Assembly: GCA_030390025.1 (NCBI GenBank) | Contig: CM059441.1 | Span: 20,708,001-20,772,000, forward strand | Reading direction: 5' to 3' | From: Squalus acanthias | Taxonomy: Eukaryota | Length of the DNA stretch: 64,000 bases | Part shown: one piece after another, positions 4,469 through 48,778 of the stretch | Layout: each line of letters starts with the position of its first letter | Position numbering within the stretch: the first letter of the stretch is position 1 | Notes under the pieces: generated by a model | Databases searched by the model: none | What the model was told of the DNA's origin: nothing | What the model saw: the letters and a program-made list of their open reading frames with translations, nothing else | Translations under genes and position numbers: made by a program

Positions 4469-4597
4469 CTAGAAAGCCTCCTTGTGCTCATGGTCAGACT
4501 TCTCATAAATATAAGCGGGGACGTCTTCATGTGTCTGAGTGATGGATTTGCGTCTTGCCATGTCAGGTGTGAAATCTTGTCCATCATCCCTGAAAGA
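4469..4597 (-). CDS. Gene A terminal exon, SFRDDGQDFTPDMARRKSITQTHEDVPAYIYEKSDHEHKEAF*
   Basis: Acceptor (T)9-AAAG in phase 0, matching the upstream donor. Ungapped homology to the gene B terminal exon (EDVPAY vs EDAPTY at identical codon positions). TAG at 4469-4471. Confidence 0.75.
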   Translation of the reverse strand, partial: SFRDDGQDFTPDMARRKSITQTHEDVPAYIYEKSDHEHKEAF

Positions 4598-4818
4598 CTT
4601 TAAAAAAAAAGTGTTGGTAAATTATTCTCGTCATACAATAGCGCGTCGGTTGATGTAAATTAGAAGAAAATTTAGCAATTGTGGCTGATAAAGGATTCCA
4701 TTATAACAAAGTTGCATTTTCTTTTGTTTTACTTTTTTACATAAGTTAATTAAGAAGCTGGAATAAATTAGATGAAGGAGGTACCCATACAACAACAACA
4801 ACAACTTGTATTTATATA

Positions 4819-5104
4819 TGATGTGGAGATGCCGGTGTTGGACTGGGGTGGACAAAAGTGAGAAGTCGCACAACACCAGGTTATAGTCCAACAGCTTTAT
4901 TTGAAATCACAAGCTTTCGGAGCCGAGGTGTGATAAAGGGCAGTTGGAAAGATTAACTGTAATCATCTGGCAGTGTTCTCTGACTATATATGCTGTGACT
5001 ATATGCATCTCTTCACTTCACCTGACAAAGGGGCAGCGCTCCGAAAGCTTGTGATTTCAAATAAAGCTGTTGGACTATAACCTGGTGTTGTGCGACTTCT
5101 CACA
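4819..5104. mobile_element. Penelope-like terminal fragment in inverted configuration, inserted in an L2 3' tail
   Basis: About 65-bp inverted arms, 12-bp TSD TGTATTTATATA, and a degenerate hammerhead core (CTGACAA) at 5018-5054. Confidence 0.75.
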
Positions 5105-6860
5105 TGTATTTATATAGTGCCTTTAACACAGTAAAACATCCCAAGGCGCTTCACAGGAGTATTATAAGACAAAAAGTTTGACACCGAGCCACATAAGGAG
5201 AAATTAGGGCAGGTGACCAAAAGCTCGGTCAAAGAGGTAGGTGTTAAGGAGCGTCTTAAATGAGGAAAGAGAGGCGGAGAGGTTTAGGGAGGGAATTCCA
5301 GAGCTTAGGGCCCAGGCAACAGAAGGCACGGCCACCAATGGTTGAGCGATTATAATCAGGGATGCTCAAGAGGGCAGAATTAGAGGAGTGCAGATATCTC
5401 GGGAGGGGCGGGGGGGGGGGGGGGGTTGGAGGAGATTACAGAGCTAGGGAGGGGCGAGGCCATGGAGGGATTTGAAAACAAGGATGAGAATTTTGAAATT
5501 GAGGAGTTGCTTAACTTTTCATCATGCCCATAAGAATTTTTTAATAATCATTTTTGTTTCTGTATAAATATATGAATGTAACATTTCAACCTGCTTTCCA
5601 ATTGATCCATGCTAACCACTTGGTACTATCAGTCGCATGGATAGTAGGGATCGGTTGGATCCAAGAATCACTTTATACAACAAACACAGAAGGCAGCCAT
5701 TACACCTCCACACCAAAAACTGAAAGTTCAAGTAGGTTGAAAGCTTGGGCCTGGTCAAGCTCGGGGTCCCTCACAAGCCTTGAACTCAATTTATGAGCAG
5801 ATGCAAGCAGGGGTATCAGCTGCTGAAGTCGACTCAATGTTTGTCTCTTTCTGTATGTTTCTTGTCCTCTCACCTCCCATGGAGACCTGGAATCCAGTCG
5901 GGGTTCAACCTTCTAACAACTGTAGCAATGATCTTGCTTTGGGAGTGGAGGACTGGTGAGTTCTGTTTTGTTATGTTAACATGTAAGTCCTAATTCTAGG
6001 TTATGAGCCCTCAGCTCAAGCCCCAGGAAGCAACAGGATGGTGGTGGTGGTGGGGGGGGGGGGGGGGTGTGCGGGCAGGGAGCCTGGGATAGAGTCACTG
6101 AGAAAGTGGGAAAGAATGAATGGGGAAGAGGCAGGAGTGAGCCATCAGGGATGCCAGGAGGCACTAAACAGGGAGGTTAGGATTAGGAGTTGTATGGGAT
6201 AAGGTTGGGACGAGGAGGGATCAAGATGGGATAATATTGCACCACCTATCTTGCACCAGGAGCCCGATGAAAATTAAGCTCTAGTGCTTAAAATGATGCT
6301 ACAAAGATAAGAAATTTAACACACAGGCCAGGATTCTCCTGCCAGCTGCAGCATCAGAAGAGGCAGCTGTGGAGCTAAAGGGGCAGAAGCGCCTCGAAGA
6401 TTGGCACATTGGTCTCCTTGTAGGCCTCGGCAGAGACTAAGGGGGAAAAATTCAGTTGGTTGGTGCCTCCAGTTGGTGCCTGGCTATGAGTTACTGCCGG
6501 GAACCTCAGCACCAGGCAGATCATGACGTCAGTGAGCGTGCAACGCTCACTGGGCACCCGATCTGCAAAATTAATTGTCGCCCCCTGCCTTAGCGCCTCA
6601 CCCCGACAGGGATAGGGAGAGGCGGCGTCAAGCAGGTGGATGCCGGCTCCAGGGACGCTACTTAAAGGGATCATGAGTAATGAGTCACAGCTGTCAGGTT
6701 AGTGCTGATTCACTGCTTCCTTGTCAGTTTGACATTGTGCAACAGTTTAATTCAGTCATTTAAAGGTTGTTTAGTATCAGGAGTGTTGTGGCTACTAAAA
6801 ATTAGTTACATTTATTCTCACAACATATCAAAGTGCTACACTTGGTTACATTAATAGGGG

Positions 6861-7977
6861 ATGTACTGGCAGTCGACCTCGCCCTCCAGGATCTACGGCG
6901 GAGGGGGCGGAGGCAGCGTGCAAGATTGGAATGTGTGGCCGAGGGAGGAGAAGGGCCATGAGGGCTCTCAACAGGAGGCCTTACCCTCCGAGGGTATTCC
7001 GAGAGCACTTCTGCTACCTCCAATTAGTGAGGAGCAGTGTATTAGAAGGCTCTGCTTCAGCAAGGAGGTGGTCACAGAACTCTCCATCTCCTGCAACCAG
7101 ACCTCCAGCCTCAGATCAGGGTGACCACGGCTCTCTCAGTGGCAGTCAACTCAATTTCTTTGCCAGTGGATCCTTCCAGTCTGCAACAAGAGATGCAACT
7201 AACATCTCACAATTCGATGTCTATTGCTGCATCAGGGAGGTCACAGAGGCTTTCTACAGTAGGAAAAGGGACTAAATTTCCTTCCCTATCACAGAGAGAA
7301 GTAGGACGAACGTGCATGTGGCTTTTCCAGGATAGCAGGATTCCCCATGGTGCAGGGCGCCATTGACTGCACCCACGTGGCTTTGCGGGCACCGCATAAC
7401 AATCCTGAGATCTTCCATAACCGCAAAGGCTACTACTCACTTAATGTGCAGTTGGTTTGCGACCACACACAGCGAATCCTCACTGTCAATGCCTGCTATC
7501 CTGGCAGCAGCCACGATGCCTTCATCCTGCGCCTGACCGGTGTGCCAGCACTCTTCCAGCCACCACATCAAACTCAGAGACAAGGGTTATCTGCTTTCCA
7601 CCTGGCTCATGACTCCCCTCCGCAACCCCAACACTCCTGCCCAGCACTCATATAATGAGAGCCATGCCGCCACCAGGAACATCATTGAGCAGATCATCGG
7701 GGTGCTCAAGCAACGGTTCCGTTGTCTTGACTGTTCGGGAGGAGCCCTCCAGTACTCGGCTGAGCAGATGTCCCATTTCATCGTGGTCTGCAGCATGCCC
7801 CACAACTTGGCCATCATGAGGGCCCAGCCCTTGCTACCAGGGATTGCGGGACCACCTCAGGAGGAGGAAGAGGGAGAGGAGGAGGAGGAGGAGCAGGAGT
7901 GAGGGAGGAGGCAGCCACTCAATCGGCCTTCCGGAAGGGTGGTCCGTGACCGCCTCATCAGACTGTGGTTCCAGTGA
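6861..7977 (+). pseudogene. Harbinger DDE transposase (HARBI1-like), frameshifted
   Basis: Motifs GAIDCTHV, KGYYSLNVQLVCD, YPGSSHDAFIL, DKGY and [18 protein letters not shown] are split over several frames. Confidence 0.9.
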
Positions 7978-8144
7978 ATTAAACCCCAGATCCCCGTTGC
8001 TCACCACATCCCCATCATTCCATCCCTGTCGCAGCCCATATCACAGTGCAAAGCTGAAATGAGAGACACCACAAAATAATCCAAACTGAATTAATAAAGT
8101 TATCAATTATCAGTGAACACACATTTACAACAACAATATTAACT

Positions 8145-10033
8145 ATTCATCCTTGTGCAATCCCTTAGTGCCTCTTGTTACTGTGCCTTTGCCTACTCTA
8201 GTGCTCCTACGAAGTGTTGGCCCAGTGGCTGCAGCAGGGCTGGTGGAAGGCTGCTGAGTGTCCGTGCGGGAGACTTCAGATGGTCTTGCAGGATGTCCTT
8301 GACCAGCTCTGGGCCTGGAAGACCCGGCTGTAGAGTGCACCACCTCAGCATGGCGGCAGCAGTCTGGGCTGGCTGGATGACAGGCAGCGACAAGGGCAAT
8401 GGCAGAGTGGCAGTGGTGGGAGCAGGAATGCTGTCATCCTGAGAGAGGATGGCAGCTTCCTGCTTCACTGACCCACTGCCACTCCCCCGGGGCAGCACCT
8501 CAGCAACCCTAGCAACTTGTTGGAGCACAGATTGCTGGCCTGCTGTGACACCATGTAAACCCCGGTCGACGGTGGTAGACCCAGGCACGATGGCAGCAGT
8601 CAGAGCTTGCGTTGCATCAAGCTGAGACTGCATGAGAGCAGTCTGAGATTGGATACCACCAATGCAGTCTAAGACGTTGCATCGCTTCCGCCTGTGCTGC
8701 AATGGAAGTTGCCAGATCGTCCATCACACGCGGCATCAGGTCTGGGTCGCCACGGTCTCTCTGGGAGTCTACCATCCTTTGCAGACTGGAAATGATGGGC
8801 TCCATGGTGTGCGCAGAGCTCTGTGCAATGTTGGAGGCGGACTCTTCCACGCTCCTTACCATTGCCGAGAGGCTCTCGGGCACCCTTGCCATTGCACCTA
8901 TCATCTCCGTGTGCATGCCCATCATCCTTCTTCTAAAGGCCTCCCCATCGAGGTCCTCATCTGAATCCTGTGCAGCAGAACTCGCTCGCGAACTCGCCCT
9001 CTGGGGAGCTGGCCCCCGAGCTACCCTTTCCCCCTGGCCTTGCTGCAGCCCACTTGTCCCCGGTGCCTCACCCTGTGCAGATCCCGCTACTATACTAGCC
9101 TCTAAAGAATGCGTAGTGCCAGTATCTGAGCTGGTGCCTGTGGGTAAGACATGCAGTGACGCGGTGTGTTCTTTCCTCCACCTCCTCTTCTCCTGCCTCG
9201 CTCTCAATGGTACCCCCAGGGACTGGCTGCTCAGGTGCTTGCTCATTATCTGAAAGCATAAAGGCACAAGATTCAGGTTAAGGTGAGGGGAGGGCACAGG
9301 AAGGGAGAAATGCATGCATACAGCATGATTAGCTGGAAATTGCAAAAGGCTTGTGGGGTGAGATGGAAGTGGGATGTGAGAAGAAGGAGTAGGGATGAAC
9401 ATACTGTTGTTGTCCCCAAGGGGGTCAATGTTGCTGGTGGCCACGGTGCCCACCACCTGGTACCCAATAATTTGCAGCACTCGAGTCTCTAGCTCAGACA
9501 GTGGTTGGGTGTCGGCTTGTCCCCTGCCTGTGCGCTCCTGCTCCCTCCTGTTGTGAGCCACTTTGGCCTGCTAGAGAAAGGAAAGTTTGTGATGAGTGTG
9601 GAGCAATGTGTTTGGGTGATGTGCCTGCCATAGTTGAATAGTTGTCAGTGTGTGCAAGGTGTGTGATGTGGGTGTGAGTGTTGGTAGGTGGAGATTGTTG
9701 GTGGGTGAGTGCTGGGGGTGTGGTGCTTTGGGCAGTGTGTGCAGACTATGGTTCAGATGGTGGTATGTAGCATTTGTTGAAGCATTGACTCACACTGACC
9801 ACCAGAGTGAGGTTGTTAAATTTCTTCTTGCACTGGGTCCTGGGGACCACAATGCTGCCCGAGACATGCTGGGCTACCTCCCTCCACATGGTGTGGAAGA
9901 CTTGCGGCGAGGGCCTCCTGCCACTTGCCGGATAGAGCACCGCCCTCCATCTTTCTACTGCGAACACCAACACCTCCAATGCATGGTCGCAGAATCTGCG
10001 GGCTCTTTCCCTGGGGCATGGATCTGCCATCAT
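8145..10033 (-). pseudogene. Harbinger Myb/SANT-like DNA-binding protein gene, spliced and frameshifted
   Basis: RARRFCDHALEVLV...WREVA...RTQCKKKFNNL trihelix motif. Exon 2 at 9405-9567 reads AKVAHNRREQERTGRG, and a further acceptor lies at 9249. Confidence 0.8.
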
Positions 10034-12926: not shown

Positions 12927-12982
12927 CATAGCATTGTAAACTGGGTTAGCTTCTTCCTCTGTGTGTGTTAATCCTTTCTGAC
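12927..12982 (-). CDS. Gene A cytoplasmic exon, (G)QKGLTHTEEEANPVYNAM
   Basis: tcgttcttag acceptor and gtaaga donor, phase 1 to 0. Its 56-nt length and phases are identical to gene B exon 57039-57094. Confidence 0.85.
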
Positions 12983-13822: not shown

Positions 13823-14690
13823 TGTCAGCTGTGGCTCAGTTAGTAATAACTTCTGAGTCAGCAGGTTGCGGATTCAAGTCCCACTCCAGAGTCTTGAGCA
13901 CAAAGATCGAGGCTGACACTCCAGTGCAGTGCTGAGGGGAGCGCTGCACCGTCGGAGATGCCGTCTTTCGGAAGAGACGTTAAACCGAGGCCCCGCCTGC
14001 TCTCTCAGGTGGGCGTAAAAGGTCCCGTGGCACTACGTCGAAGGCAAGCAAGCGAATTCTCCCCAGCGCCCTGACCAATATTTACCCCTCAACCCACTTC
14101 ACTAAAAAACAGATAATCTGGTCATCATCACGTTCTGTTTGTGTGAGCTTGTTGTCACGTTTCCTACATTTACAAAAGTACTTCATAAAACATAAGACGT
14201 AGGAGCAGGAGTCGGTCATTTGGCCCCTCGAGCCTGCTCCGCCATTCAATAAGATCATGGCTGATCGGATCTTGGCCTCAACTCCACTTCCCTGCCCACT
14301 CCCCATAACCCTTGACTCCCTTATCGTTCAAAAATCTGTCTATCTCCACCTTAAATATATTCAATGACCCAGCCTCCACAGCTCTCTGGGGAAGAGAATT
14401 CCAAAGATTCACGACCCTCTCAGAGAAGAAATTCCTCCTCATTTCCGATTTAAAGGGGTGCCCCCTTATTCTGAAATTATGCCCCCTAGTTCTAGATTGC
14501 CCCACGAGGGGAAACATCCTCTCTGCATCTACCCTGTCAAGCCCCTTCAGAATCTTATATGTTTCAATAAGATCCCCTCTCATTCTTCTAAACTCCAATG
14601 AGTATAGGCCCCAACCTTTCTTCATAAGATAACTTGGCTGTAAAGTGCTTTGGGACGTTCTGAGGTGAACGGTGCTGTATCAAGTTCTGT
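13823..14690 (+). mobile_element. Deu-domain SINE split by a CR1 fragment
   Basis: Head and core at 13823-14187; the tail resumes at ttggctgtaaagtgctttggg (14634). Confidence 0.75.
14189..14632 (-). mobile_element. CR1 LINE 3' fragment inserted in a SINE
   Basis: LYSLEFRRMRGDLIETYK...RVVNLWNSLP. Confidence 0.88.
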
Positions 14691-15033
14691 CTTTCTTTTC
14701 TTTGCATCTAGTGCTGGTACTAAGCTCTGGCCGGTGCAGGGGCTGACACAGGCCATTTAGGCTGGTCAGGAGCCTGCGACTGACCAGCGGCCAGGAAAAT
14801 TGGCCCTTACGAAACCAGCAGAATTATAAGTAGAGAGGAACGCAGGAATTTACTGAACTGGTCAAACCACTGCAGTCTATCTGGACAGTCCAAGTGACCA
14901 GAAAATATCCCACGACAGCATCGATCAAATGTTATTTTGTACTCTATGACAGAGGATGGAGAAACGGGTAGCACTTGTGCTTTAACCTGCAAGATCCTGT
15001 TTTACCTGGAATCAAATTTGTAACCGTAAATTA

Positions 15034-15180
15034 GGCCGGGAATTTCCTCGGAGCCGCTCGCTCCCACTCTGCCGCCGCAACTTTGCCGGCAGCGCGGCAG
15101 AAAACCCACTTCCACGGATTCCGCCGCGAAGTTCCGGCCGGCCGGAGCGGGAGCGAGCAGCTCCGTGGAGATTCCCGGCC
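15034..15180. mobile_element. GC-rich fold-back MITE
   Basis: GGCCGGGAAT...ATTCCCGGCC termini with extended internal complementarity. Confidence 0.6.
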
Positions 15181-15262
15181 TCGCTCTTCAGCTTGCCCAG
15201 TTGGAAAGCAGAGAGGTTGTCCTTTCATTTGGAACTGGAATTTTCTAAATCGTGTAACTTAC

Positions 15263-15369
15263 CAGCTGCCGTCTGCTTTCTGGATCTTCTGACAAAAATA
15301 ATAGCAAGAAGGAGCAGTATAACCAAAACTCCGAGCGCAGGTACCAGAATGATGATTAAGTTTGTGGTG
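15263..15369 (-). CDS. Gene A transmembrane exon, TTNLIIILVPALGVLVILLLLAIIFVRRSRKQTAA
   Basis: Polypyrimidine ttcttctgtttccatag acceptor and gtaagt donor, phase 2 to 1. A 23-residue hydrophobic run is followed by the basic stop-transfer RRSRK. Confidence 0.9.
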
Positions 15370-15874
15370 CTATGGAAACAGAAGAATGGAAAGTTTAGTA
15401 CTCCAAAGTGAGGCTCATTTACATCCTCCCAGCAATACAGCCTCAAATTTTAAAATTTCACTATTTCCTTATCTCGCCTGTACTGCTGAAAAGCACTGAT
15501 GTTTGCAGGGTGTAATCGCACAGGCACTGGCCAATATTCATGCCTAAGCCTTGCTAACGACTGTCAGCAGGCAAATTCAGTTGCAGTTGGATCACAGATA
15601 ACTCCAATCCTATCCTCACTTAATATTCACAAGAAAACTTTTCCAGCGGGTTGCCGGGCAGCGAGCAGGAGAGGAAATCCTGAAGAATCTTCCCCTGTGT
15701 GAATTCGGACCATTTCTCCGTTGAAAGTACCTGAGCAGTGACCCTCAGGGAGCAGCCCTTGTTAAACACAGAACCACATTAGCATCGCAACCATGCCCCG
15801 CATCCCATCACACTCGTGAGCAATGCCAGCGAGATCAGCTAGCTTCTTTAAACAGTCTTAATGAACATGTTTTG

Positions 15875-19460: not shown

Positions 19461-19480
19461 TCTCACTGTAGTTCACAAAG

Positions 19481-22900: not shown

Positions 22901-22944
22901 AGAATATTAATTTCATTTATTTCTTTATTGCTTCATAAAACTAC

Positions 22945-23005
22945 CTTTCATTTCCCCAGTCGGTTGTTCTCTGAAGTTCAGTGGTCACTGTTGGTGTTGT
23001 AAGAG
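22945..23005 (-). CDS. Gene A Thr-rich stalk exon, (A)LTTPTVTTELQRTTDWGNE(S)
   Basis: ttgtttttacag acceptor and gtagtt donor, phase 1 to 2, exactly bridging the V exon and the TM exon. Mucin-like Thr/Pro composition. Confidence 0.8.
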
Positions 23006-28995: not shown

Positions 28996-29215
28996 TCATT
29001 TAAGACTATTTTAATGTAATTCTTCTGCATTATCAGTCAGTCAAATGTATAGGTTGTTTATTGTTCCTGAATATATATTTTAAGTCTGAAAATCCTTTTT
29101 AAATCTCTGATTAAGACCAAGAATGTTTAAACAGATAACAGCCACAAGGAACAGTTCATTTATCGGCATGCTTATACTGTACTTGAAGTAAAAGGTGATT
29201 AATTACTTAACTTAC

Positions 29216-29545
29216 CTTCAAGAACATTCAATTTGACAGGAGCCATTTCATCGTTGCCCAGCATTGCTATCCCACACCAATACCATCCTGCATCTTCGAG
29301 TGATAATTGTTTCATTGTTACAGAGAATATCCCACTGGTTTGGTTGTCCACAATGAGCGGTCTGTTGAATCGTTCCTGTTGTATTCTTTGAGTGCCAGCA
29401 ATCACAGTGCATGAGTTTCTCCGTGTTCCTTTACACCAGTACTTCTCAAAATACCTGTTACTTGGTGTGTTATATCGACAATGGACAGTGATGGATTCTC
29501 CTAATTTTCCAGTCACCTCCCCTGGTCCTATTATTCCGTGTGAAC
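29216..29545 (-). CDS. Gene A IgV exon 3 (membrane-proximal), CD300/pIgR-type V domain
   Basis: 330 nt, phase 1-1, cag acceptor and gtaagt donor. Motifs: B-strand Cys (VHCRY), KYWC-x7-C second disulfide, DAGWYWCG. Confidence 0.92.
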
Positions 29546-32094
29546 CTGTTAGAACAGGGAGCAATGGGTTGTGTCATGACCATGTATTCGAAGAAAGCAT
29601 GGATGAGGAAAAAGCCACTCAATCTAGCGAGCTTGATTCTTCCATTGACCATGTATAATTTGGACTATCACGGACAACTGAGTGATACCAAGAGCACTGC
29701 TTGTCAAGTCCCTTAATGATCATAAATCAGCACAGTGCAAATCCCTTGAAAGGCTTTACTGAAATGTTAGTGACACGAGTTTCGTTTGTAACTGGTCAGT
29801 TTTTCTAGATGTCTGTATGGATTTGTGTTCCACTTTAGTGTTCCGCACTAAACCTTCCTCCAATCTTATTACTATGGTTACATTCAGTCAGAAGTCCTCC
29901 TCCCATCCACATGAAGAATTGGAAGTTATACCTAAAAGGAAAGATTGAACAGGCTGGGGCACTTTTCTCTCGAAAAGAGAAGACTGAAGGGTGAGGTGAT
30001 AGAGGTCTTCAGGATTATGAAAGGGTTCAATAGGGTAGACGTAGAGAAGGTGTTTCCACTTGCGGCCAAGACCAGAACTAGGAGCCATAAATATAAAGTT
30101 AGTCATTAATAAATCTAATAAGGAATTCAGGAGAAACATCATTACCCAGAGAGTGGTCAGAATGTGGAACATCTACCACAAGGGGAAGTTGAGGTGTGTA
30201 GCATGGGTGCATTTAAGGGGAAGCTAGATAAACACATGAGGAAGAAAGGAATAGAAGGATATGTTGATGGGGTTAGATGAAGAGGGGTGGGAGGAGGCTC
30301 ATGTGGAACATAAACACTGGCATGGACCTGTTGGGCCAAATGGCCTGTTTCTGTGCTGTAAATACTTTGTAAGTAAAAATATTTAAAGAAACACATACCT
30401 TTCACCCACTATTCAACCCAATAGCTATGTTGATTTTGTGAACCTAAACAGTAATCATAAAGGCATACTTGATGATTCAGTGGGACCGATTTTCATTCCC
30501 CTGCCAGGTGGAAATAGGGCAGTAGCATGATTAAAATGACAGCACTTACTGCCCCATTCCCATCAACATCGAGATCTCTGTCATTTTTCCAGCGGCCTTG
30601 AAATGGATGGCCCGGGTGCCAGCCAGAAACACGGAAATCGGAGTCCTGTGACATCTATAGGACCCTGGTGCAACTTTACAGTATGAATGGGTGGCGCATG
30701 TGTCGCGTACCTCTGCCCATTGGTACTTGGTATTGAGTAGTCTAACCAGCAGTCCTTAAAGGGCCGCTGCAGCCCACTCAGACAAAGTATTAAAAGAAAG
30801 GGTTTTTACATTATTATTATCAGAAGAGGAGAAGCATTAAAGCACCTTCTGGCTCCACAAATATCGAACACCGCCCCCACCCCCCCCCCCCCCCCACCCC
30901 ATCATCCCCCTTGCCTCACCTTCTGCAGCCCTCCCCACTGCTTTAAATTACCTACAGCAGGCGCTGGGCTCCGCAATAGAGTTGTCAGATCTCTGACCCT
31001 TCCGATCAGCGAGCTGCTCCAAAAATGCGAGCAGTCGCTGAAAATGGATCGGGCCTTGGACCACTTCCACCGGGTAGGTGGTAGGGTCACTCTGCCCATC
31101 TCCTACCAGCCTCCCGCCCGCCCGAGGGAATCGTTCACTTGAAAATCGGTCACAAGAGAACTTAAACTTAAATCAATGGAGAGTAAATTGCTTCATTTAA
31201 AAGTGGTAATTTGCTGAGGATGGGGTGTTGGGTGGTGGTGGTGGTGGGGGGAGGGGGCAAGAAATATGGGGCAAAATGACTAAACACTTGGAGAAACAAG
31301 AGTTCACCAGAAACAAAAAAACAAAAGATGCTGGAAACACTCAGCAGGTCAGTCAGCATCTGTGGAGAGAAACAGACAAGTTAATGTTTTGAGTGTGAAC
31401 GCTTTTTCATAACTGAAAAATAACAGTTAGACCGGCATATTAATTCAATCAGAAAAAGGAAGGGGCGGGGGGGAGTATATATATACCTATAATAAATAAC
31501 AAAAACAATCAAACCCAGAGGAGTATGAGGAGCACAATGTAACAGATCAATCTCATTCAAGTAATGGATAGAAGCATTCAGACATTAAAGAAGCAAAGGG
31601 TGCCAGATGTGAACCAGATGTGGGCCGTGTGGGAGGAGGTGAATGGGCAGGTGCTCCATAGCCTGCGTTTTCACAGGAAGGCGCCAAGGGAAGTGCAGCT
31701 GGAATTAAGCCTCCCACTCACTTTGCTATTTACACACCCTTTGTCTCTTTAATGCCTTAATAATTCTATCCATTATTTGACGATTATTTGCTACATTATA
31801 CCGCACACGATTCCTTTGTTTGTTCGTTATGTACATTTTCCGCCCTCCTTTTTATAATTGCATCGACATGCTTGCCTGCCTCTCTGAAGCATGTTCCGCA
31901 CCTGAAAGATTGGGCCAGGATTTGCTGGGAAAGTAACGGCGACTTTAATGCGGAGGCCGTCATTAGTGTGAGCTCATTAATCATACATTAATGACCAAGA
32001 ATGTTTAAACAGATAACAGCCACAAGGAACAGTTCATTTATCGGCATGCTTATACTGTACTTGAAGTAAAATGGTGATTAATTACTTATCTTAC

Positions 32095-32424
32095 CTTCAA
32101 GAACATTCAATTTGACAGAAGCCATTTCATCGTTGCCCAGCATTGTTATCCCACACCAATACCATCCTGCATCTTCGAGTGATAATTGTTTCATTGTTAC
32201 AGAGAATATCCCACTGGTTTGGTTGTCCACAATGAGTGGTCTGTTGAATCGTTCCTGTTGTATTCTTTGAGTGCCAGCAATCACGGTGCATGAATATCTC
32301 CGTGTTCCTTTACACCAGTACTTCTCAGAATTCCTGTTACTTGGTGTGTTATATCGACAATGGACAGTGATGGATTCTCCTAATGTTCCATTCACCTCCC
32401 CTGGTCCTATTATTCCGTGTGAAC
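32095..32424 (-). CDS. Gene A IgV exon 2
   Basis: 330 nt, phase 1-1, cag acceptor and gtaaga donor. Same motifs, open frame. Confidence 0.9.
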
Positions 32425-34829
32425 CTGTTAGAACAGGGAGCAATGGGTTGTGTCGTGACCATGTATTCGAAGAAAGCATGGATGAGGAAAAAGCCACTCA
32501 ATCTAGCGAGCTTGATTCTTCCATTGACCATGTATAATTTGGACTATCACGGACAACTGAGTGATACCAAGAGCACTGCTTGTCAAGTCCCTTAATGATC
32601 ATAAATCAGCACAGTGCAAATCCCTTGAAAGGCTTTACTGAAATGTTAGTGACACGAGTTTCGTTTGTAACTGGTCAGTTTTTCTAGATGTCTGTATGGA
32701 TTTGTGTTCCACTTTAGTGTTCCGCACTAAACCTTCCTCCAATCTTATTACTATGGTTACATTCAGTCAGAAGTCCTCCTCCCATCCACATGAAGAATTG
32801 GAAGTTATACCTAAAAGGAAAGATAGAACAGGCTGGGGCACTTTTCTCTCGAAAAGAGAAGACTGAAGGGTGAGCTGATAGAGGTCTTCAGGATTATGAA
32901 AGGGTTCAATAGGGTAGACGTAGAGAAGGTGTTTCCACTTGCGGCCAAGACCAGAACTAGGAGCCATAAATATAAAGTTAGTCATTAATAAATCTAATAA
33001 GAAATTCAGGAGAAACATCATTACCCAGAGAGTGGTCAGAATGTGGAACATCTACCACAAGGGGAAGTTGAGGCGTGTAGCATAGGGGCATTTAAGGGGA
33101 AGCTAGATAAACACATGAGGAAGAAAGGAATAGAAGGATATGTTGATGGGGTTAGATGAAGAGGGGTGGGAGGAGGCTCATGTGGAACATAAACACTGGC
33201 ATGGACCTGTTGGGCCAAATGGCCTGTTTCTGTGCTGTAAATACTTTGTAAATAAAAATATTTAAAAAAAACACATACCTTTCACCCACTATTCAACCCA
33301 ATAGCTATGTTGATTTTGTGAACCTAAACAGTAATCATAAAGGCATACTTGATGATTCAGTGGGACCGATTTTCATTCCCCTGCCAGGTGGAAATAGGGC
33401 AGTAGCATGATTAAAATGACAGCACTTACTGCCCCATTCCCATCAACACCGAGATCTCTGTCATTTTTCCAGGGGCCTTGAAATGGATGGCCCGGGTGCC
33501 AGCCAGAAACACGGAAATCGGAGTCCTGTGACATCTATAGGACCCTGGTGCAACTTTACAGTACCAATGGGTGGCGCATGTGTCGCATACCTCTGCCCAT
33601 TGGTACTTGATATTGATTAGCCTAACCAGCAGTCCTTAAAGGGCCGCTGCAGCCCACTCAGACAAAGTATTAAAAGAAAGGGTTTTTACATTATTATTAT
33701 CGGAAGAGGAGGAGCATTAAAGCTCCTTCTGGCCCCACAAATATCAAACCCCCTTGCCTGACCTTCTGCAGCCCTCCTCACTCCTTTAAATCACCTACAC
33801 CGGGTAGGTGGCAGGGTCACTCTGCCCATCTCCTGCCCACCCGAGGGAATCGTTCACTTGAAAATCAGTCACAAGAGAACTTAAACTTAAATCAATGGAG
33901 AGTAAATCTTACAGATCTTACATATCATTGCTTCATTTAAAAGTGGTAATTTGCTGAGGATGGGGTGTTGGGTGGTGGTGGTGGGGGGGGGGGGGGTGAA
34001 GAAATATGGGGCAAGATGACTAAACACTTGGAGAAACAAGAGTTCACCAGAAACAAAAAAACAAAAGATGCTGGAAACACTCAGCAGGTCAGTCAGCATC
34101 TGTGGAGAGAAACAGACAAGTTAACGTTTTGAGTGTGAACGCTTCTTCATAACTGAAAAATAACAGTTAGACCGGCATATTAATTCAATCAGAAAAAGGA
34201 AAGGGGGGAGTATATATATACCTATAATAAATAACAAAAGCAATCAAACCCAGAGGAGTATGAGGAGCACAATGTAACAGATCAATCTCATTCAAGTAAT
34301 GGATAGAAGCATTCAGACATTAAAGAAGCAAAGGGTGCCAGATGTGAACCAGATGTGGGCCGTGTGGGAGGAGGTGAATGGGCAGGTGCTTCATAGCCTG
34401 CGTTTTCACAGGAAGGCGCCAAGGGAAGTGCAACTGGAATTAAGCCTCCTACTCACTTTGCTATTTACACACCCTTTGTCTCTTTAATGCCTTAATAATT
34501 CTATCCATTATTTGACGATTATTTGCTACATCATACCGCACACGATTCCTTTGTTTGTTCGTTATGTACATTTTCCACCCTCCTTTTTATAATTGCATCG
34601 ACATGCTTGCCTGCCTCTCTGAAGCATGTTCCGCACCTGAAAGATTGGGCCAGGATTTGCTGGGAAAGTAACGGCGACTTTAATGCGGAGGCCGTCATTA
34701 GTGTGAGCTCATTAATCATACATTAATGACCAAGCATGTTTAAACAGATAACAGTCACAAGGAACAGTTCATTTATCAGCATGCTTATACTGTACTTGAA
34801 GTAAAATGGTGATTAATTACTTATCTTAC

Positions 34830-35159
34830 CTTCAAGAACATTCAATTTGACAGAAGCCATTTCATCGTTGCCCAGCATTGTTATCCCACACCAATACCAT
34901 CCTGCATCTTCGAGTGATAATTGTTTCATTGTTACAGAGAATATCCCACTGGTTTGGTTGTCCACAATGAGTGGTCTGTTGAATCGTTCCTGTTGTATTC
35001 TTTGAGTGCCAGCAATCACGGTGCATGAATATCTCCGTGTTCCTTTACACCAGTACTTCTCAGAATTCCTGTTACTTGGTGTGCTATATCGACAATGGAC
35101 AGTGATGGAGTCTCCTAAAGTTGCAGTCACCTCCCCTGGTCCCATTATTCCGTGTGAAC
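34830..35159 (-). CDS. Gene A IgV exon 1 (N-terminal)
   Basis: 330 nt, phase 1-1, tag acceptor and gtaaga donor. Same motifs, open frame. Confidence 0.9.
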
Positions 35160-36041
35160 CTATTAGAACAGGGAGCAATGGGTTGTGTCGTGACCATGTA
35201 TTCGAAGAAAGCATGGATGAGGAAAAAGCCACTCAATCTAGCGAGCTTGATTCTTCCATTGACCATGTATAATTTGGACTATCACGGACAACTGAGTGAT
35301 ACCAAGAGCACTGCTTGTCAAGTCCCTTAATGATCATAAATCAGCACAGTGCAAATCCCTTGAAAGGCTTTACTGAAATGTTAGTGACACGAGTTTCGTT
35401 TGTAACTGGTCAGTTTTTCTAGATGTCTGTATGGATTTGTGTTCCACTTTAGTGTTCCGCACTAAACCTTCCTCCAATCTTATTACTATGGTTACATTCA
35501 GTCAGAAGTCCTCCTCCCATCCACATGAAGAATTGGAAGTTATACCTAAAAGGAAAGATAGAACAGGCTGGGGCTCTTTTCTCTCGAAAAGAGAAGACTG
35601 AAGGGTGAGCTGATAGAGGTCTTCAGGATTATGAAAGGGTTCAATAGGGTAGACGTAGAGAAGGTGTTTCCACTTGCGGCCAAGACCAGAACTAGGAGCC
35701 ATAAATATAAATTTAGTCATTAATAAATCTAATAAGAAATTCAGGAGAAACGTCATTACCCAGAGAGTGGTCAGAATGTGGAACATCTACCACAAGGGGA
35801 AGTTGAGGCGTGTAGCATAGGTGCATTTAAGGGGAAGCTAGATAAACACATGAGGAAGAAAGGAATAGAAGGATATGTTGATGGGGTTAGATGAAGAGGG
35901 GTGGGAGGAGGCTCATGTGGAACATAAACACTGGCATGGACCTGTTGGGCCAAATGGCCTGTTTCTGTGCTGTAAATACTTTGTAAGTAAAAATATAAAA
36001 AAAAACACATACCTTTCACCCACTATTCAACCCAATAGCTA

Positions 36042-37467
36042 AAGAACATAGAACATAGAACAGTACAGCACAGTACAGGCCCTTCGGCCCTCGATGTTGT
36101 GCCGAGCATTGTCCGAGACCAAGATCAAGCTATCACACTCCCCATCACTCTGGTGTGCTCCATGTGCTTATCCAATAACCGCTTGAAAGTTCCTAAAGTG
36201 TCTGACTCCACTATCACAGCAGGCAGTCCATTCCACACCCCAACGACTCTCTGAGTAAAGAATCTACCTCGGACATCCCTTCTATATCTCCCCCCATGCA
36301 CCTTATAGTTATGCCCCCTTGTAACAGCTGCCTCTACCCGAGGAAATAGTCTCTGAACATCCACTCTATCTATCCCCCTCATCATCTTATAAACCTCTAT
36401 TAAGTCGCCTCTCATCCTCCTCCGCTCTAAAGAGAAAAGCCCCAACTCCCTCAATCTTTCCTCATAAGACCTCCCCCCCAAACCAGGCAGCATCCTGGTA
36501 AATCTCCTTTGCACTCTTTCCAATGCTTCCACGTCCTTCCTATAGTGAGGTGACCAGAACTGCACACAATATTCCAAATGTGGTCTCACCAAGGTCCTGT
36601 ACAGTTGCAGCATAACCTCACGGTTCTTAAACTCAAAACCTCTGTTAATAAACGCCAACACACCATAGGCCTTCTTTACTGCTCTATTAATTTGAGTGGC
36701 AACCTTCAGAGATCTGTGGATATGAACCCCCAGATCCCTCTGCTCCTCCACGTTCCTCAGAACCCTGCCGTTGACCCTGTAATCCTTATTCAAATTTGCC
36801 CTACCAAAATGAATCACCTCGCACTTATCAGGGTTAAATTCCATCTGCCATTTTTCGGCCCAGCTCTGCATCCTATCAATGTCTCTTTGCAGCCTACAAC
36901 AGCCCTCCACCTCATCCACTGCTCCACCAATCTTGGTGTCATCAGCAAATTTACTGATCCACCCTTCAGTCCCCTCCTCCAAGTCATTGATAAAAATCAC
37001 AAACAGCAGAGGACCCAGCACCGACCCCTGTGGCACACCGCTGGTAACTGGTCTCCAGTCCGAAAATGTTCCATCCACCACCACCCTCTGCCTTCTATGA
37101 GATAGCCAGTTACTTATCCAATCGGCCAAATTTCCCTCTATCCCACAACTCCTTACTTTCTTCATGAGCCGACCATGGGGAACCTTATCAAACGCCTTAC
37201 TAAAATCCATGTATACGACATCAACTGCTCTACCTTCATCTACACACTTAGTTACCTCCTCAAAGAATTCAATCAAATTTGTTAGGCAAGACTTACCCTT
37301 CATGAATCCGTGTTGACTATCCCTGATTAAGTTGCCCCTTTCCAAATGGTCATAAATCCTATCCCTCAGGACCTTTTCCATTATCTTACCAACCACCGAA
37401 GTAAGACTAACCGGCCTATAATTACCAGGGTCATTCCTATTTCCTTTCTTGAAGAGAGGAACAACAA
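36042..37467 (-). mobile_element. Young 5'-truncated CR1 LINE with an uninterrupted 423-aa RT/C-terminal frame
   Basis: GVPQGSVLGP, FADD and YCVQFW motifs, and a (TTCTATG)n 3' tail. The empty site aatagctatgttg is visible in repeat units 1 and 2. Confidence 0.95.
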
Positions 37468-38949
37468 TGTTGATTTTGTGAACCTAAACAGTAATCATAA
37501 AGGAATACTTGATGATTCAGTGGGACCGATTTTCATTCCCCTGCCAGGTGGAAAAAGGGCAGTAGCATGATTAAAATGACAGCACTTACTGCCCCATTCC
37601 CATCAACATCGAGATCTCTGTCATTTTTCCAGGGGCCTTGAAATGGATGGCCCGGGTGCCAGCCAGAAACACCGAAATCGGAGTCCTGTGACATGTATAG
37701 GACCCTGGTGCATCTTTACAGTATGAATGGGTGGCGCATGTGTCGCGTACCTCTGCCCATTGGTACTTGGTATTGAGTAGTCTAACCAGCAGTCCTTAAA
37801 GGGCCGCTGCAGCCCACTCAGACAAAGTATTAAAAGAAAGGGTTTTTACATTATTATTATCAGAAGAGGAGGAGCATTAAAGCACCTTCTGGCCCCACAA
37901 ATATCAAACCCCCTTGCCTGACCTTCTGCAGCCCTCCTCACTCCTTTAAATCACCTACACCGGGTAGGTGGTAGGGTCACTCTGCCCATCTCCTGCCCAC
38001 CCGAGGAAATCGTTCACTTGAAAATCAGTCACAAGAGAACTTAAACTTAAATCAATGGAGAGTAAATCTTACAGATCTTACATATCATTGCTTCATTTAA
38101 AAGTGGTAATTTGCTGAGGATGGGGTGTTGGGTGGTGGTGGGGGGGGGGCGGGGGGGCAAAGAAATATGGGGCAAAATGACTAAACACTTGGAGAAACAA
38201 GAGTTCACCAGAAACAAAAAAACAAAAGATGCTGGAAACACTCAGCAGGTCAGTCAGCATCTGTGGAGAGAAACAGACAAGTTAACGTTTTGAGTGTGAA
38301 CGCTTCTTCATAACTGAAAAATAACAGTTAGACCGGCATATTAATTCAATCAGAAAAAGGAAAGGGGGGAGTATATATATACCTATAATAAATAACAAAA
38401 ACAAAAACAAAAACAAGCAAACCCAGAGGAGTACGAATAGCATAATGTAACAGATCAATCTCATTCAAGTAATGGATAGAAGCATTCAGACATTAAAGAA
38501 GCAAAGGGTGGCAGATGTCAACCAGATGTGGACCGTGTGGGAGGAGGTGAATGGGCAGGTGCTGCATCGCCTGTGTTTTCACAGGAAGGCGCCAAGGGAA
38601 GTGCAACTGAAAGTAAGCCTCCCACAAACTTTGCTATTTACACACCCTTTGTCTCTTTAATGCCTTAATAATTCCATCCATTATTTGACGATTTTTTGCT
38701 ACATCATACCGCACACGATTCCTCTGTTTGTTCGTTATGCACAATTTCCGCCCTCCTTTTTATAATTGCATCGACATGCTTGCCTGCCTCTCTGAAGCAT
38801 GTTCCGCACCTGAAAGATTGGGCCAGGATTTGCTGGGAAAGTAACGGCGAGTTTAATGCGCAGGCCGTCATTAGTGTGAGCTCATTAATCATACATTAAT
38901 GAGCTGACCTCCCTATATTCCATACCCCTTAATCTTCTCAAAGTACCAG

Positions 38950-43947: not shown

Positions 43948-45330
43948 CAATAGTTGGGAAAATGCTGGAATCTATTATAAAGGATGCAATAACTGGGCAC
44001 TGAGAAACTAATAGTAAGATTGGGCAGAGTCAACATGGATTTATGAAAGGGAAATCCTGTTTGACAAACCTATTGGAGTTCTTTGAGGATGTAACTAGTG
44101 GAGTAGACAAAGGGGAACCGGTAGATGTGGTGTATCTGGATTTTCAGAAGGCCTTCGATAAGGTCCCACACAAGAGGTTGGTGAACAAAATTAGGGCACA
44201 TGGAATTAGCAGTAATATACTATCATGGATTGAGAATTGGTTAACAGACAGAAAACAAAGAGTAGGGATAAACGGGTCTTTTTCAGGATGGCAGGCTGTG
44301 ACTAGTGGGGTACCGCAAGGATCGGTGCTTGGGGCCCAGCTATCCACAATCTATATCAATGATTTGGAGGAGGGGACTAAATGTAACATTTCCAAATTTG
44401 CTGATGATACAAAGCTAGGTGGCAGTGTCAGTTGTGAAGAGGATGTGAAGAGGCTTCAAGGGGATCTCGACAGCCTCAGTGAGTGGGCAAGAACATGGCA
44501 GATGGAATATAATGTGGATAAATGTGAAGTTATCCACTTTGGTAGAAAAAACAGAAAGGCAGAGTATTTCCTAAATGGTGAAAGATTGGGGAATGCAGAT
44601 GCTCAAAGGGACCTGGGTGTCCTTGTACATGAGTCACTGAAAGTGAATGTGCAGGTGCAGCAAGCCATTAGGAAGGCAAATGGTATGCTGGCCTTCATTA
44701 CAAGAGGATTTGAGTACGGGAGTAAAGAAGTCTTACTCCAATTATATGGGACCTTGGTGAGACCACACCTGGAGTACTGTGTACAATTTTGGTCTCCTTA
44801 CCTAAGGAAGGATATACTTGCCATAGAGGGAGTGCAATGAAGGTTCACGAGATTGATTCCTGGGAAGGCGGGACAGTCTTATGAGAAGAGATTGAGTAAA
44901 CTAGGCCTGTATTCTCTTGAATTCAGAAGAATGAAAGGGGATCTCATTGAAGCATACAAAATTATTACAGGGCTTGATAGGATGGATGCTGGGAGAATGT
45001 TTCCCTTGGCTGTGAGTCTAGAACCAGGGGCCACAGCCTCAAGATAAAGGGTAGGCCATTCAGGACTGAGATGAGAAGAAATTTCTTCACACAGAGGGTG
45101 GTGAACCTTTGGAATTCTCTACCCCAGAGGGCTGTGGAGGCTCAGTCATTGGGTATATTCAAAACAGAAGTCAATAGATTTCTGACTAGTAAGGGCATCA
45201 AGGGATATGGCGATAGGGCCGGTGAATGGAGTTGAGGCAGAAGATCAGCCATGATCTCATTGAATGGTGGAGCAGGCACGAAGGGCCGAATGGCCTACTC
45301 CTGCTCCTATTTCTTATGTTCATATGTTCT
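43948..45330 (+). mobile_element. 5'-truncated CR1 LINE with a stop and a frameshift
   Basis: RT ORF 44043-44840 (GVPQGS, FADD) and a CR1 3' UTR. It interrupts an older LINE. Confidence 0.92.
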
Positions 45331-45881: not shown

Positions 45882-46403
45882 AGGAATATGATGGAATACT
45901 CATCAATTGCTTGGAAGGATGCAGCTGCAACAACACTCTAGGAGCTCGGCACCATCCAGAATAAAGCAGTCTGTTTGATTAGCGCTCCTATCACTGAGTT
46001 CAATATTCATCTATTCCACCACCAACGCACTGTGGTTGCCGCATGTACTATTTATACTTTGCACTGTAACAACTCACCAAGGTTAATTCGACAGCACTTC
46101 TCAACCCCATAACTTCTACCCTGAGAAGAACAAGAGCAGCAAAGAAATGGAAACACCGTCACCTGCAAGGAACCCTCCAAGTCACACACCATCCTGATTT
46201 TGACATATAACTTCATCGTCGCTGGCTCAATATCTTGGCATTTTGAACGAAACACCATTGTGGGAGCACCATCACCACAAGGACTGCTAGGGTTCAAGGA
46301 GAAGTACCAGTACCACGTTCTCAGGCGAATTACAGATGGGCAACAAACCTGAAATTGACGACGTTGCCAACATCCCGAAACAAATAATTAAAGAAAATAT
46401 AAT

Positions 46404-47157
46404 AGGCCAGAAATTCGGCTCTCCGGCTTCCCGCGGGTGCAAGGATCGCGCGCGTACTTACCTACCGCGCCTGCCGTTGTGCTTCGGGCCCGCGTGGACT
46501 TCGGCTCCTGGGCCTCCTGCAGCTGCCGGCGCGCAGTGCTTGCGTATCCCAGGGGCGCAGTTAGTTCGAAGCGTTCCCTGGGATCACGTGGGCCATGGAG
46601 AGCCAATCGGAGCAGGGAATCGCCATTCATAGATTTTGACAGGAAGACCTGTCAAATCTATGAATAGAGATCACCCCCCAAAACCTAACTAAAACTTCAA
46701 ATACATTTTTAAAAAAATCACATTTTTTAAATAACTATAAATTACATAAATTAACTACTTTAAACAGAAATTTTAATTTTTGAAAAAATTAATTACACTT
46801 TTTAACGCTGCTAAAAATAAACTTACCTTTCTTTAAAGTATGTAAAAATGATAAACCTGTTGAAAAAATGTTTAAACTGTATTTAATTCACCACTTACCT
46901 TGTTAAAAGCAGGCCTTGCGCCTCCTTTTTTCCTGCGCAGCTTCTCCGTACTTACCCTCATGGAGAAACCTGAAAAAAAACCCGAAGTTCGCTGCGTGCG
47001 CGCTGCCTCTCCGGCGCACGCGGTTGACCCTCGAACCCCTTCTTTCCCGAGACCGGAAGTTCCGGTTTCCCGTGCATGCGTGAAACTGGCACTTCCGGTG
47101 GCCCTACGGGTGAGTACACAGCGCGTACTCACCCGTGGAGACCCGAATTTCTGCCCC
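46404..47157. mobile_element. Non-autonomous Harbinger-type element
   Basis: TIR ..CAGAAATTCGG / CCGAATTTCTG.., AAT on both flanks, CpG-rich arms around an AT-rich core. Confidence 0.65.
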
Positions 47158-48729
47158 AATGTCAAATTCATCATCGGAAAGAAGCTCTGCTCTTACCATT
47201 GCAGTCTGCTGCGGTAAGTGTGGTCCTACTTTAGCTATAACACAGCTATCGCTTATGGTGGGAATTGGGTCGTAGTCGTTTCTTTTCCTATGTTATCAAA
47301 GCATGCAAGAAATTTCCAATCACATTGTTGTTTGTTAATTGCTTAATGTGCCAGGAATGAGCAATAATCTGTTGCCATCACATAGCCCTTAGTTTAATTT
47401 ATGAGTACCGTGTAATTCATCCACTGAACTAATAAATTCATCAGGGCTGAAAATCTGTGGTTCCACTCCGCCACTGCAATAACGGTCTCTCAGGTTCGCG
47501 TTTGTCCCCCATTAGAATTTCAAGGACCAGGCAATTCACAAAGAGTGGTTGGGTGCCACGCCCAGTATCAGTGCAGCTAGGCGCCCACTGGAGGGAGGGC
47601 TGAAAATTGTTGCCTTGTCAACGAACCGCTGAGGTGGATCGCTGACAGGTCCGGCGGAAGAAAGAATGAAGATTGGCCCCTTTTCCACAAAGGTCGCCTT
47701 CTCTTGCAGCCTCTGATTGCTGTGGGGTCGGCTGCTGTGAGAAAACTGGGCCTTTACCAAGCTGATGGTCCCCATGCCCACCCTCCAGAAAGTACTGTGC
47801 ACCAACCGATACGTTGGGAGTGCCAAAGGTTGGAAGTTGAGCAGGTGAATTCATCTTGCCAGGCACGCCTCCATCTGTGACGTCCAATTTTGAAGGGGCG
47901 GGCGCAGGAACTGCCCTACCCCCCAGCCTCTCCCCACAGACCCCAACACTGCTCAAATGGGGCAAAAACCGGAGTAACATGACCTTGCCCCAATTTCCTC
48001 CTTCACCTGCCCCAGTAGCGCTGAACACCCTGAAAATATCGTGAATTTTGGGGCCATCAAATGTGCATCTAATGAGTACAAAAACCTCCACAGAATCAGA
48101 CTGGAATTCTAAAAGCCAGCAGGGTCTTGGAAAGCAGAGTATAAAAATGACATGAAAAGAATAACGCTAAGCACTTAGCTTACTTAATGAACTCACAACA
48201 ACCTCATCACTTAAATGTGTCACAGAAATATTACATGTGACGTGATAAATGAAGCTGTCAAAAAATAGCCCAGAAATGAATCTTTGAATTACAGCAGGCA
48301 AATGCTTAGTGCATTCATATAATCCCGTTAATGCGTTTGTTAAAGTAACGGGCTGAGGAGTGTCATAACTTCTTAATCATTAATATTCTAAATTCGCTGC
48401 CATTTCTATGCTAATATTTTGTTAACATACATAATATTATCTGAATCTACTGATTATAACAATGCATCTTCCTGCATTATGAAAATCGAACTTTATTTTT
48501 TTAAATATCAACCTTTATGGGCACATCCATAGATCCCTATGGACAAATAAAACACTGTCAATTACATGATGTAGTTTTTAAAAGTAAAACTCCTTTTTTT
48601 TTGCAAGCACCTGAAGAGAAAGGTCACAAAGTAATTCTGTCAAACCTGGACTCAATCAGTGGAACCCTGTCATAACAAGAGGTGTAATCCTAGCTTGTTA
48701 TAAAAGTTCTATTTTATTTGCTTCCTTAC

Positions 48730-48778
48730 CTGATAACGAAAGAGTGATGAGGATGATAGTAAATGCAATGTTTTTCAT
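48730..48778 (-). CDS. Gene A first coding exon, signal peptide MKNIAFTIILITLSLS(G)
   Basis: AACATG start, basic residue then hydrophobic core, gtaagg donor in phase 1. It joins to GSHG-IMGP of the V exon, completing a typical signal peptide. Confidence 0.85.

Follow-up and report, generated by a model that had tools for sequence, protein, structure and literature searches.

Tandem triplication of a V-domain exon in an expressed CD300/pIgR-type receptor gene of Squalus acanthias

The polymeric immunoglobulin receptor (pIgR) and the CD300 receptors are the described systems closest to gene A, a receptor gene on the minus strand of a 64,000-nucleotide stretch of the Squalus acanthias genome (GenBank assembly GCA_030390025.1, contig CM059441.1, positions 20,708,001 to 20,772,000), the whole of which is called the window below. 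The V-like domains of pIgR number five in mammals, four in the frog and two in teleosts. The CD300 proteins are the nearest characterised relatives, and their ligands are lipids. A lipid-particle role has been proposed for CD300g (nepmucin), which is also said to have been found by Takatsu in 2006 to take up IgA and IgM. According to PMC7247439, CD300f carries PI3K and Grb2 motifs, and CD300g has neither inhibitory nor activating motifs.

Gene A resembles each of these receptors in part. With mammalian CD300f (CLM-1/IREM-1) it shares the second disulfide of the V domain and a YxxM motif in the tail; CD300f, however, has one V domain and canonical immunoreceptor tyrosine-based inhibitory motifs (ITIMs), whereas gene A combines three V exons with a tail free of ITIMs. 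Like CD300g, as the latter is presented in PMC7247439, gene A is devoid of inhibitory motifs and of an adaptor-binding transmembrane segment, and therefore the class "neither inhibitory nor adaptor-coupled", to which a prediction made from the DNA letters had assigned it (the original prediction), has a mammalian precedent. The likeness to CD300g is one of description, CD300g being an endothelial protein with a single V and a long mucin-like domain. With pIgR, gene A has in common tandem V domains of the pIgR/CD300 type on a type I membrane protein; the likeness comes from V domains and architecture only, and orthology is supported neither by the tree nor by sequence identity.

The nearest counterparts are found in sharks and a chimaera, where they are known as predicted proteins. 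The first ~350 amino acids of Heptranchias perlo P0002, and its counterparts, have collinear parts, an uncharged transmembrane segment, the N-P-V-Y/P-T-Y-I-Y tail frame and the same upstream neighbour, a gene with an ITIM and an immunoreceptor tyrosine-based switch motif (ITSM). Their ectodomains consist of two kinds of V domain, Va followed by Vb, and they keep the tyrosine of an I-T-Y-D-M element in the tail, whereas gene A has Va three times, no Vb and has lost this tyrosine. The Scyliorhinus torazame protein scyTo_0008609 (P0001, 460 aa) likewise contains three V domains through exon duplication, its domains 2 and 3 being near-identical, but there it is Vb that was duplicated (Va-Vb-Vb) and the tail has N-S-L-Y-K-D-L, an ITIM pattern. 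The presence of the lineage in databases, the frequency of multi-V relatives in fishes and the exon duplication in S. torazame are thus already known, and the threefold Va, the missing Vb and the lost tail tyrosine are particular to gene A. In the literature covered, which lay largely outside the subscription journals, CD300-like or pIgR-like genes of sharks were not found as the subject of any paper.

Structure and transcription of gene A

Gene A consists of eight minus-strand exons running from an ATG at 48778 to a stop codon at 4471..4469, which together comprise 1392 nt, that is 463 amino acids and the stop, with no internal stop in any exon. AG and GT are found at the two sides of every internal exon, and the phase chain (0-1, 1-1 three times, 1-2, 2-1, 1-0) is consistent throughout. 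The parts follow in the order leader, three V-set exons, stalk, transmembrane segment and tail, and the hydrophobic stretch of the transmembrane exon contains no D, E, K or R. The model was verified exon by exon, the queries being single exons or stored database proteins. Both the 463-aa assembly of signal peptide, three V domains, stalk, transmembrane segment and tail and the uncharged transmembrane segment, as given in the original prediction, were recovered in this way.

The Va exon lies in three tandem units, each composed of ~2.3 kb of intron, the V exon and ~100 nt downstream (Table 1). Homology among the units begins at ~38902 and stops ~106 nt beyond V3. A stretch of the first unit (~36041-37467), holding a reverse-transcriptase sequence of a long interspersed nuclear element (LINE), is without counterpart in the other two, and therefore the insertion took place after the duplication; this insertion also accounts for the greater length of the first unit. 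Since the V exon is 330 nt long and its two ends are both in phase 1, every copy keeps the reading frame. The intron blocks between the units are 91.3-99.2% identical in a mosaic pattern, which indicates that the triplication is recent. Between the exons V1, V2 and V3 the differences amount to 6, 10 and 14 of 330 positions, V3 being the most diverged copy (10/330 compared with V2 and 14/330 compared with V1). At the protein level the V domains differ from one another at 11 of 109 residues, several of which belong to the loop that follows the first Cys.

V2 has a single substitution of its own, at exon position 34 (window 32391); it changes T-G/A-T/K to N-G-T and creates a new N-glycosylation sequon in the A/A' strand of the middle domain.

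Transcription was examined by comparing four of 11 listed sequencing runs (X1, X2, X3 and X7) with positions 29200-35199. Run X1 (137 million letters, 2017) bears the guessed label "RNA?"; its depth is high on V-exon bins and on interspersed repeats, the latter covered in all four runs, and zero on unique intron bins, and thus X1 behaves like RNA. One X1 contig joins 32422 to 34828 across 2405 letters, with a depth of 6543 and at least 28 letters on each side, and the omitted segment has the ends CT..AC, corresponding to GT..AG when the minus strand is read. Another X1 contig ends at the V1 acceptor (35161) in a loose end of 26 letters, which corresponds without mismatch to 48732-48757, the end of the leader exon, and is unique in the window. 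The V1-specific 5' part is covered by a 107-nt contig at 35054-35160 with 0 differences, and a contig of depth 18048 crosses position 29253 in V3 with no difference listed; any contig of at least 31 letters at 29253 must include one of two V3-specific sites.

These contigs show the splice from leader to V1 and, in RNA-like sequence, the joining of a V1/V2-type donor to a V2/V3-type acceptor. Transcription includes sequence found only in V1 as well as sequence found only in V3. Joining in RNA is thus shown for two V exons at least: V2 has a single unique site and no contig diagnostic for it, so that two tandem V domains are shown and not three. The junction between V3 and the stalk is not among the X1 rows shown. 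The original prediction had made spliced transcripts its own test, and on this point the leader-V1 and one V-V splice were obtained, while inclusion of three V exons was not established. Gene A is a real, expressed receptor gene of the CD300/pIgR type and represents a local variant of a receptor that is annotated in other sharks. Its product, as deduced from the exons, would be a type I membrane protein in which near-identical Va domains, two or three in number, follow one another.

Run X2, from a second organism, contains a 169-letter contig on the V3-specific 3' end (29214-29324, 1 difference), with 42 unplaced letters beyond the V3 donor; a V3-stalk splice would fit these.

The Va-Vb lineage of cartilaginous fishes and its place in the family

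A search with V2 among 1.84 billion representative proteins gave 2675 matches, and the best 150 of these all have 2-12 V stretches, a result to be read with the fact that summed scores, by which the matches were ranked, give multi-domain proteins an advantage. The statement in the original prediction that one V domain is typical therefore fails here. Among the matches listed, the closest relatives are proteins named "polymeric immunoglobulin receptor-like" by NCBI from Heptranchias, Cetorhinus, Heterodontus, Chiloscyllium, Mustelus and Scyliorhinus canicula; further relatives are an uncharacterized Rhincodon protein, the hypothetical S. torazame protein and a 358-aa protein of the chimaera Callorhinchus. 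The ten relatives used below are those of the eight named elasmobranch species, P0004 and the Callorhinchus protein.

Gene A is collinear with these proteins. In tblastn comparisons of P0001, P0002 and P0004 with the window, the leader, V, transmembrane and both tail exons appeared in the same order; the leader exon is 82% identical to that of Heptranchias perlo P0002, Va is 69-75% identical to the named relatives, and tail exon 1 is 89% identical to P0002 over 18 amino acids. The stalk exon was placed by local alignment to seven shark stalks, with the best score (54) to P0002. Gene A thus has leader, Va, stalk, transmembrane segment and two tail exons collinear with and similar to those of the lineage, and by position and sequence it is the counterpart of the shark "polymeric immunoglobulin receptor-like" gene.

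All ten relatives have an ectodomain in which Va is followed by a clearly distinct Vb (Va-Vb-Vb in S. torazame). In gene A, all three V domains fall in the Va group, and a Vb exon was not found in a lenient tblastn search of nine Vb domains against 15000-29216 (best E 0.14); the V domain conserved in every relative examined is hence the one missing here. Judged from these predicted proteins, the usual build of the lineage is leader, Va, Vb, a short Thr-rich stalk, an uncharged transmembrane segment and a tail of ~70 amino acids with conserved tyrosines and no canonical ITIM. Since ten relatives have this Va-Vb arrangement with a non-ITIM tail, the multi-V design is older than the radiation of the elasmobranchs; what is specific to the lineage of gene A is limited to the Va triplication and the missing Vb. 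The proposal that gene A was recently built from an inhibitory single-V ancestor is not upheld, because the relatives already combine Va-Vb with the same non-ITIM tail and the triplication alone is recent. The receptor lineage is conserved from the chimaera to sharks, and it is known in databases under an automatic name only.

Other searches gave less. With the V2 exon alone against proteins of 60-190 amino acids, the size range covered, one candidate was obtained and none scored. A search with the Callorhinchus protein P0158 gave seven proteins, of which those outside Callorhinchus are teleost proteins named "pIgR-like" or "CMRF35-like 7" or unnamed, with 27-30% identity. No protein of Squalus acanthias itself was among the matches listed in the named-relative, V2-exon and P0158 searches.

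Duplication of V exons is recurrent and independent in the family, as seen in the stored proteins P0001, P0003, P0020, P0151 and P0157; P0003 has four near-identical V domains and P0020 two. A Rhinoraja protein combines four near-identical V domains with an ITIM-type tail, and the gene downstream in Cetorhinus has two near-identical V domains.

Each V exon of gene A is matched by the Pfam V-set profile (E 5e-17 to 1e-16), and every V translation has four Cys, at residues 22, 37, 45 and 90, that is the canonical disulfide and the second Cys pair in the C-C' region that characterise CD300. Among solved structures the top single-domain match is CLM-1/CD300f (E 3e-22, 82 bits), and CD300a and CD300c-type chains match at ~1e-13; in mouse and human pIgR each of the five domains matches Va, with 21-54 bits apiece, pIgR gives the best full-length matches in the PDB, and far lower matches are those of TREM2, NKp44 and the IgM Fc receptor, which is entered there under the name Fas apoptotic inhibitory molecule 3. 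These matches to CD300f and to the pIgR domains agree with the family placement originally predicted. A single-sequence AlphaFold model of V2 reached a mean predicted local distance difference test value of 61, too poor for a fold search.

In a tree of 63 V domains (107 columns, quick search) the three gene A domains form one group, with a Shimodaira-Hasegawa-like approximate likelihood ratio test (SH-aLRT) support of 93, nested in an elasmobranch Va group (98); the Vb group (88) is separate from them, and the pIgR domains of sloth and frog stand outside the Va/Vb group on unresolved forks. Set against the described families, gene A has the tandem pIgR-type V domains, transmembrane segment and cytoplasmic tail of pIgR; with three V exons in frame it departs from the single V per chain of mammalian CD300, and it has neither a tail ITIM nor a charged transmembrane residue for DAP12, FcR-gamma or DAP10, by which CD300 proteins signal. 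As in the CD300 paralogue clusters, a related gene (gene B) adjoins it upstream.

The tail, the proposed working of gene A and rival explanations

The tyrosines of the gene A tail occur only in NPVYNAM and AYIYEK. Neither (S/I/V/L)xYxx(I/V/L) nor TxYxx(V/I) is found in the translations of the tail exons, and in tail exon 1 an NPxY overlaps a YxxM, so that the tail was correctly described at the outset as lacking ITIM and ITSM and containing NPVY/YNAM. The tail was aligned with those of the ten relatives, the gene A exon translations being entered as separate rows (11 tails). The first Tyr of P-T-Y-I-Y is present in nine of the ten relatives and in gene A (A-Y-I-Y). At the position of the N-P-x-Y Tyr, Heterodontus and Callorhinchus have Phe and Mustelus has Asp, and seven of the 11 tails have L or M at +3 from this Tyr. 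The two Scyliorhinus proteins P0001 and P0156 have N-S-L-Y-K-D-L, which fits the SxYxxL ITIM pattern, as opposed to N-P-V-Y-N-D-L in most sharks; the same tail position may therefore be inhibitory in catsharks and not in other lineages.

Traces of an older inhibitory tail were sought by comparing last exons of the gene A type with those of the gene B type. In hhalign the two profiles align in register, with I-T-Y-D-M placed under the ITIM V-T-Y-A-T-V (E 0.0042, probability 8%), and BLASTP of the gene A against the gene B last exon aligned 7 amino acids (E 0.092). This faintly suggests that the gene A tail may descend from an ITIM/ITSM tail. As the loss of the canonical motif is common to the sharks examined, the loss would be old. 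The inhibitory ancestry of the original prediction is thus slightly favoured as regards the tail and not supported as regards a recent origin from a single-V ancestor. The lineage would have shed its ITIM, yet several tail tyrosines were kept.

The explanation preferred here is that a 2.7-2.9 kb segment with the Va exon was tripled in tandem, each copy remaining in frame, and that a larger number of near-identical Va domains would raise the valency or avidity for whatever Va binds. Because gene A has neither an ITIM nor an adaptor-binding charge in its transmembrane segment, its output would most probably depend on the tail tyrosines, either for tyrosine-based sorting and uptake (NPVY, and YNAM as YxxPhi) or for signalling of the PI3K type (YxxM, as in CD300f). 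The structural and expression part of this explanation is held with considerable confidence. Uptake or PI3K signalling through the tail tyrosines is offered tentatively, as possible rather than probable, and the same reserve applies to an endocytic or decoy role, for which the tail motifs are the evidence; taken as a whole, structure, expression and function together, the explanation is somewhat favoured. On this explanation the locus represents an early stage of domain accretion in an immune receptor, in which a symmetric phase-1 V exon has been copied twice and the copies are splice-competent.

Several observations weigh against the preferred explanation, and they bear on rival ones. The V-V junction contig is the sole one listed, its flanks fit V1-V2, V2-V3 or V1-V3 alike, and a leader-V1-V3 transcript would fit the RNA data too; moreover, the RNA label of X1 is guessed and its contigs hold only 57% of the V2 words. 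It is accordingly conceivable, though we give it the smaller share of our belief, that the gene is real but that the mature protein mostly has fewer than three V domains through alternative use or skipping (e.g. leader-V1-V3), the 463-aa form being minor or absent. Beside the single junction contig, whose sides fit the V1/V2 donor and the V2/V3 acceptor, this is favoured by the covering of V1-specific and V3-specific stretches without differences, with no contig shown that is diagnostic for V2. The share of sampled V2 words in X1 (0.57, compared with 0.00 in two other samples from the same study) does not discriminate, since ~83% would be expected from V1 and V3 alone, by a count of differing positions. 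Against fewer than three domains stand the same acceptor context and the identical donor of all three V exons, from which no skipping would be predicted, the presence of X1 depth on V2 bins, the annotation of three tandem V domains in the natural relative P0001, and a junction contig deeper than the V1 5' contig (6543 and 4912, depths to be read with caution). That the triplication is itself an assembly artefact, with one or two real copies laid out in tandem, is scarcely credible: tandem units that are nearly identical are known to cause errors in assemblies and no DNA run of the same species was among those compared, but the units differ by 1-9% with indels, one has a private LINE insertion, a Va-to-Va splice in RNA contigs needs at least two Va exons, and sequences specific for V1 and for V3 are both present in X1.

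A further group of unfavourable observations concerns constraint. Vb and a Tyr kept in 10/10 relatives (I-T-Y-D-M, in gene A F-T-P-D-M with Pro in place of Tyr) are both lost, which fits relaxed constraint. N-P-x-Y is complete in just six of the 11 tails (gene A, Heptranchias, Cetorhinus, Chiloscyllium, Rhincodon and P0004). In the LDL receptor the NPxY signal has a hydrophobic residue at -5, whereas gene A and its relatives have Glu there. Purifying selection on the V copies is not seen: the ratio of nonsynonymous to synonymous differences per site (pN/pS) is 1.4, 0.65 and 0.84 between the copies, and conservation is no higher in the exons than in the introns. In one of six exon-versus-intron tests (V1-V3, exon 4.2% against 1.4% in the intron block next to it, p 0.006; with the whole intron as reference the difference is not significant) the direction was that of faster exons, and diversifying selection is not claimed. 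A gene that decays or drifts, the triplication being a neutral structural variant, would account for these values and for the lost Vb and Tyr; all eight exons are nevertheless open with intact splice sites, the spliced X1 contigs have very high word depth, and 6-14 substitutions per exon pair give little power to detect selection, so that we regard decay or drift as unlikely. A different possibility is that the Va-Vb lineage is the functional pIgR counterpart of cartilaginous fishes, a two-domain immunoglobulin transporter like that of teleosts, gene A being a valency-boosted form. The multi-V type I architecture, the full-length PDB matches to pIgR, the absence of both ITIM and adaptor charge, and the loop after the first Cys, where 7 of 13 residues are common with domain 1 of mouse pIgR (NTPSNRNSEKYWC compared with DTSVNRHTRKYWC), would agree with it, and mucosal transport of shark IgM is treated as unresolved in PMC4279169. 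On the other side, a single Va reaches 82 bits with CD300f/CLM-1 and no more than 54 bits with any single pIgR domain, the pIgR domains are not grouped with Va or Vb in the tree, whose forks are unresolved there, the nearest relatives outside cartilaginous fishes have the low identities noted above, and the name "pIgR-like" comes from automatic annotation. We consider this a long shot, and likewise the wider idea, drawn by analogy, that the lineage might be the missing capture or transport receptor for polymeric immunoglobulin, or for lipid particles, in cartilaginous fishes. As the transport and capture of polymeric immunoglobulin in sharks is left unresolved in PMC4279169, the Va-Vb lineage would nonetheless make a reasonable candidate for this role. 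Should the lineage indeed transport polymeric immunoglobulin, gene A would amount to an experiment of nature, a threefold rise in valency through exon duplication, seen at so early a stage that copies and introns are only 1-9% apart.

Feature coordinates, gene B and the non-coding surroundings

Table 1. Features of gene A, gene B and the sequence around them, in window coordinates
Feature	Position	Strand	Remarks
Gene A exon 1	48778..48730	minus	begins with ATG; signal-peptide leader MKNIAFTIILITLSLS and the first base of a Gly codon, followed by donor GT
V1 exon	35159..34830	minus	330 nt, phase 1/1, V-set of Va type
V2 exon	32424..32095	minus	330 nt, phase 1/1, V-set of Va type
V3 exon	29545..29216	minus	330 nt, phase 1/1, V-set of Va type
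Stalk exon	23005..22945	minus	61 nt, Thr-rich, A LTTPTVTTELQRTTDWGNE; local alignment to 7 shark stalks
Transmembrane exon	15369..15263	minus	S TTNLIIILVPALGVLVILLLLAIIFV RRSRKQTAA
Tail exon 1	12982..12927	minus	56 nt, G QKGLTHTEEEANPVYNAM; NPxY overlapping YxxM/YxxPhi
Last coding exon	4597..4469	minus	SFRDDGQDFTPDMARRKSITQTHEDVPAYIYEKSDHEHKEAF, then stop
Tandem triplication of Va unit	29110..38902		start-to-start spacing 2735-2879 nt
LINE reverse-transcriptase open reading frame in first unit	36128..37483	minus	RVT_1, E 6e-38
Conserved non-coding stretch upstream of gene A ATG	48780..48938	minus	~160 nt; three stops in window frame
Gene B, upstream neighbour	60158..54181	minus	
Gene B transmembrane exon	60158..60036	minus	
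Gene B small exon	57095..57036	minus	
Gene B last exon	54369..54181	minus	V-T-Y-A-T-V (ITIM) and T-E-Y-S-T-I (ITSM)

Between these exons of gene B and the N-terminal gene of fused shark models the identity is 63-90%; a V exon of gene B was not found within the window. In the fused models P0004, P0152, P0153, P0154 and P0156 a single-V ITIM/ITSM gene directly precedes the gene A-type part, and this gene order, the ITIM/ITSM gene followed by the gene A-type gene, is common to the window and the fused models. The conserved stretch upstream of the gene A ATG gave translated local alignment scores of 107 to Chiloscyllium P0153 and 95 to S. canicula P0156, and it is likely to be a conserved 5' untranslated region or promoter. 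The fused NCBI models read through this stretch, which in the window has three stops, and for this reason several NCBI shark models that fuse the gene A-type gene to its neighbours are probably read-through artefacts.

Mobile elements are also present. The last intron of gene A contains on the plus strand (7347-7899) a remnant of a Harbinger/PIF-like transposase, in which two overlapping open reading frames match the two halves of the Pfam family DDE_Tnp_4 (E 5e-14 and 2e-14), so that the remnant is frameshifted. An open reading frame of 314 amino acids at 8620-9561, on the strand opposite to the transposase remnant, has no Pfam match, and the GC content at 6001-10000 is 53-55%. A LINE RVT_1 fragment lies at 44043-44837 on the plus strand (E 2e-22), and more LINE reverse-transcriptase fragments, judged by eye from open reading frames, are situated at 1069-1560, 14281-14679 and 27484-28617.

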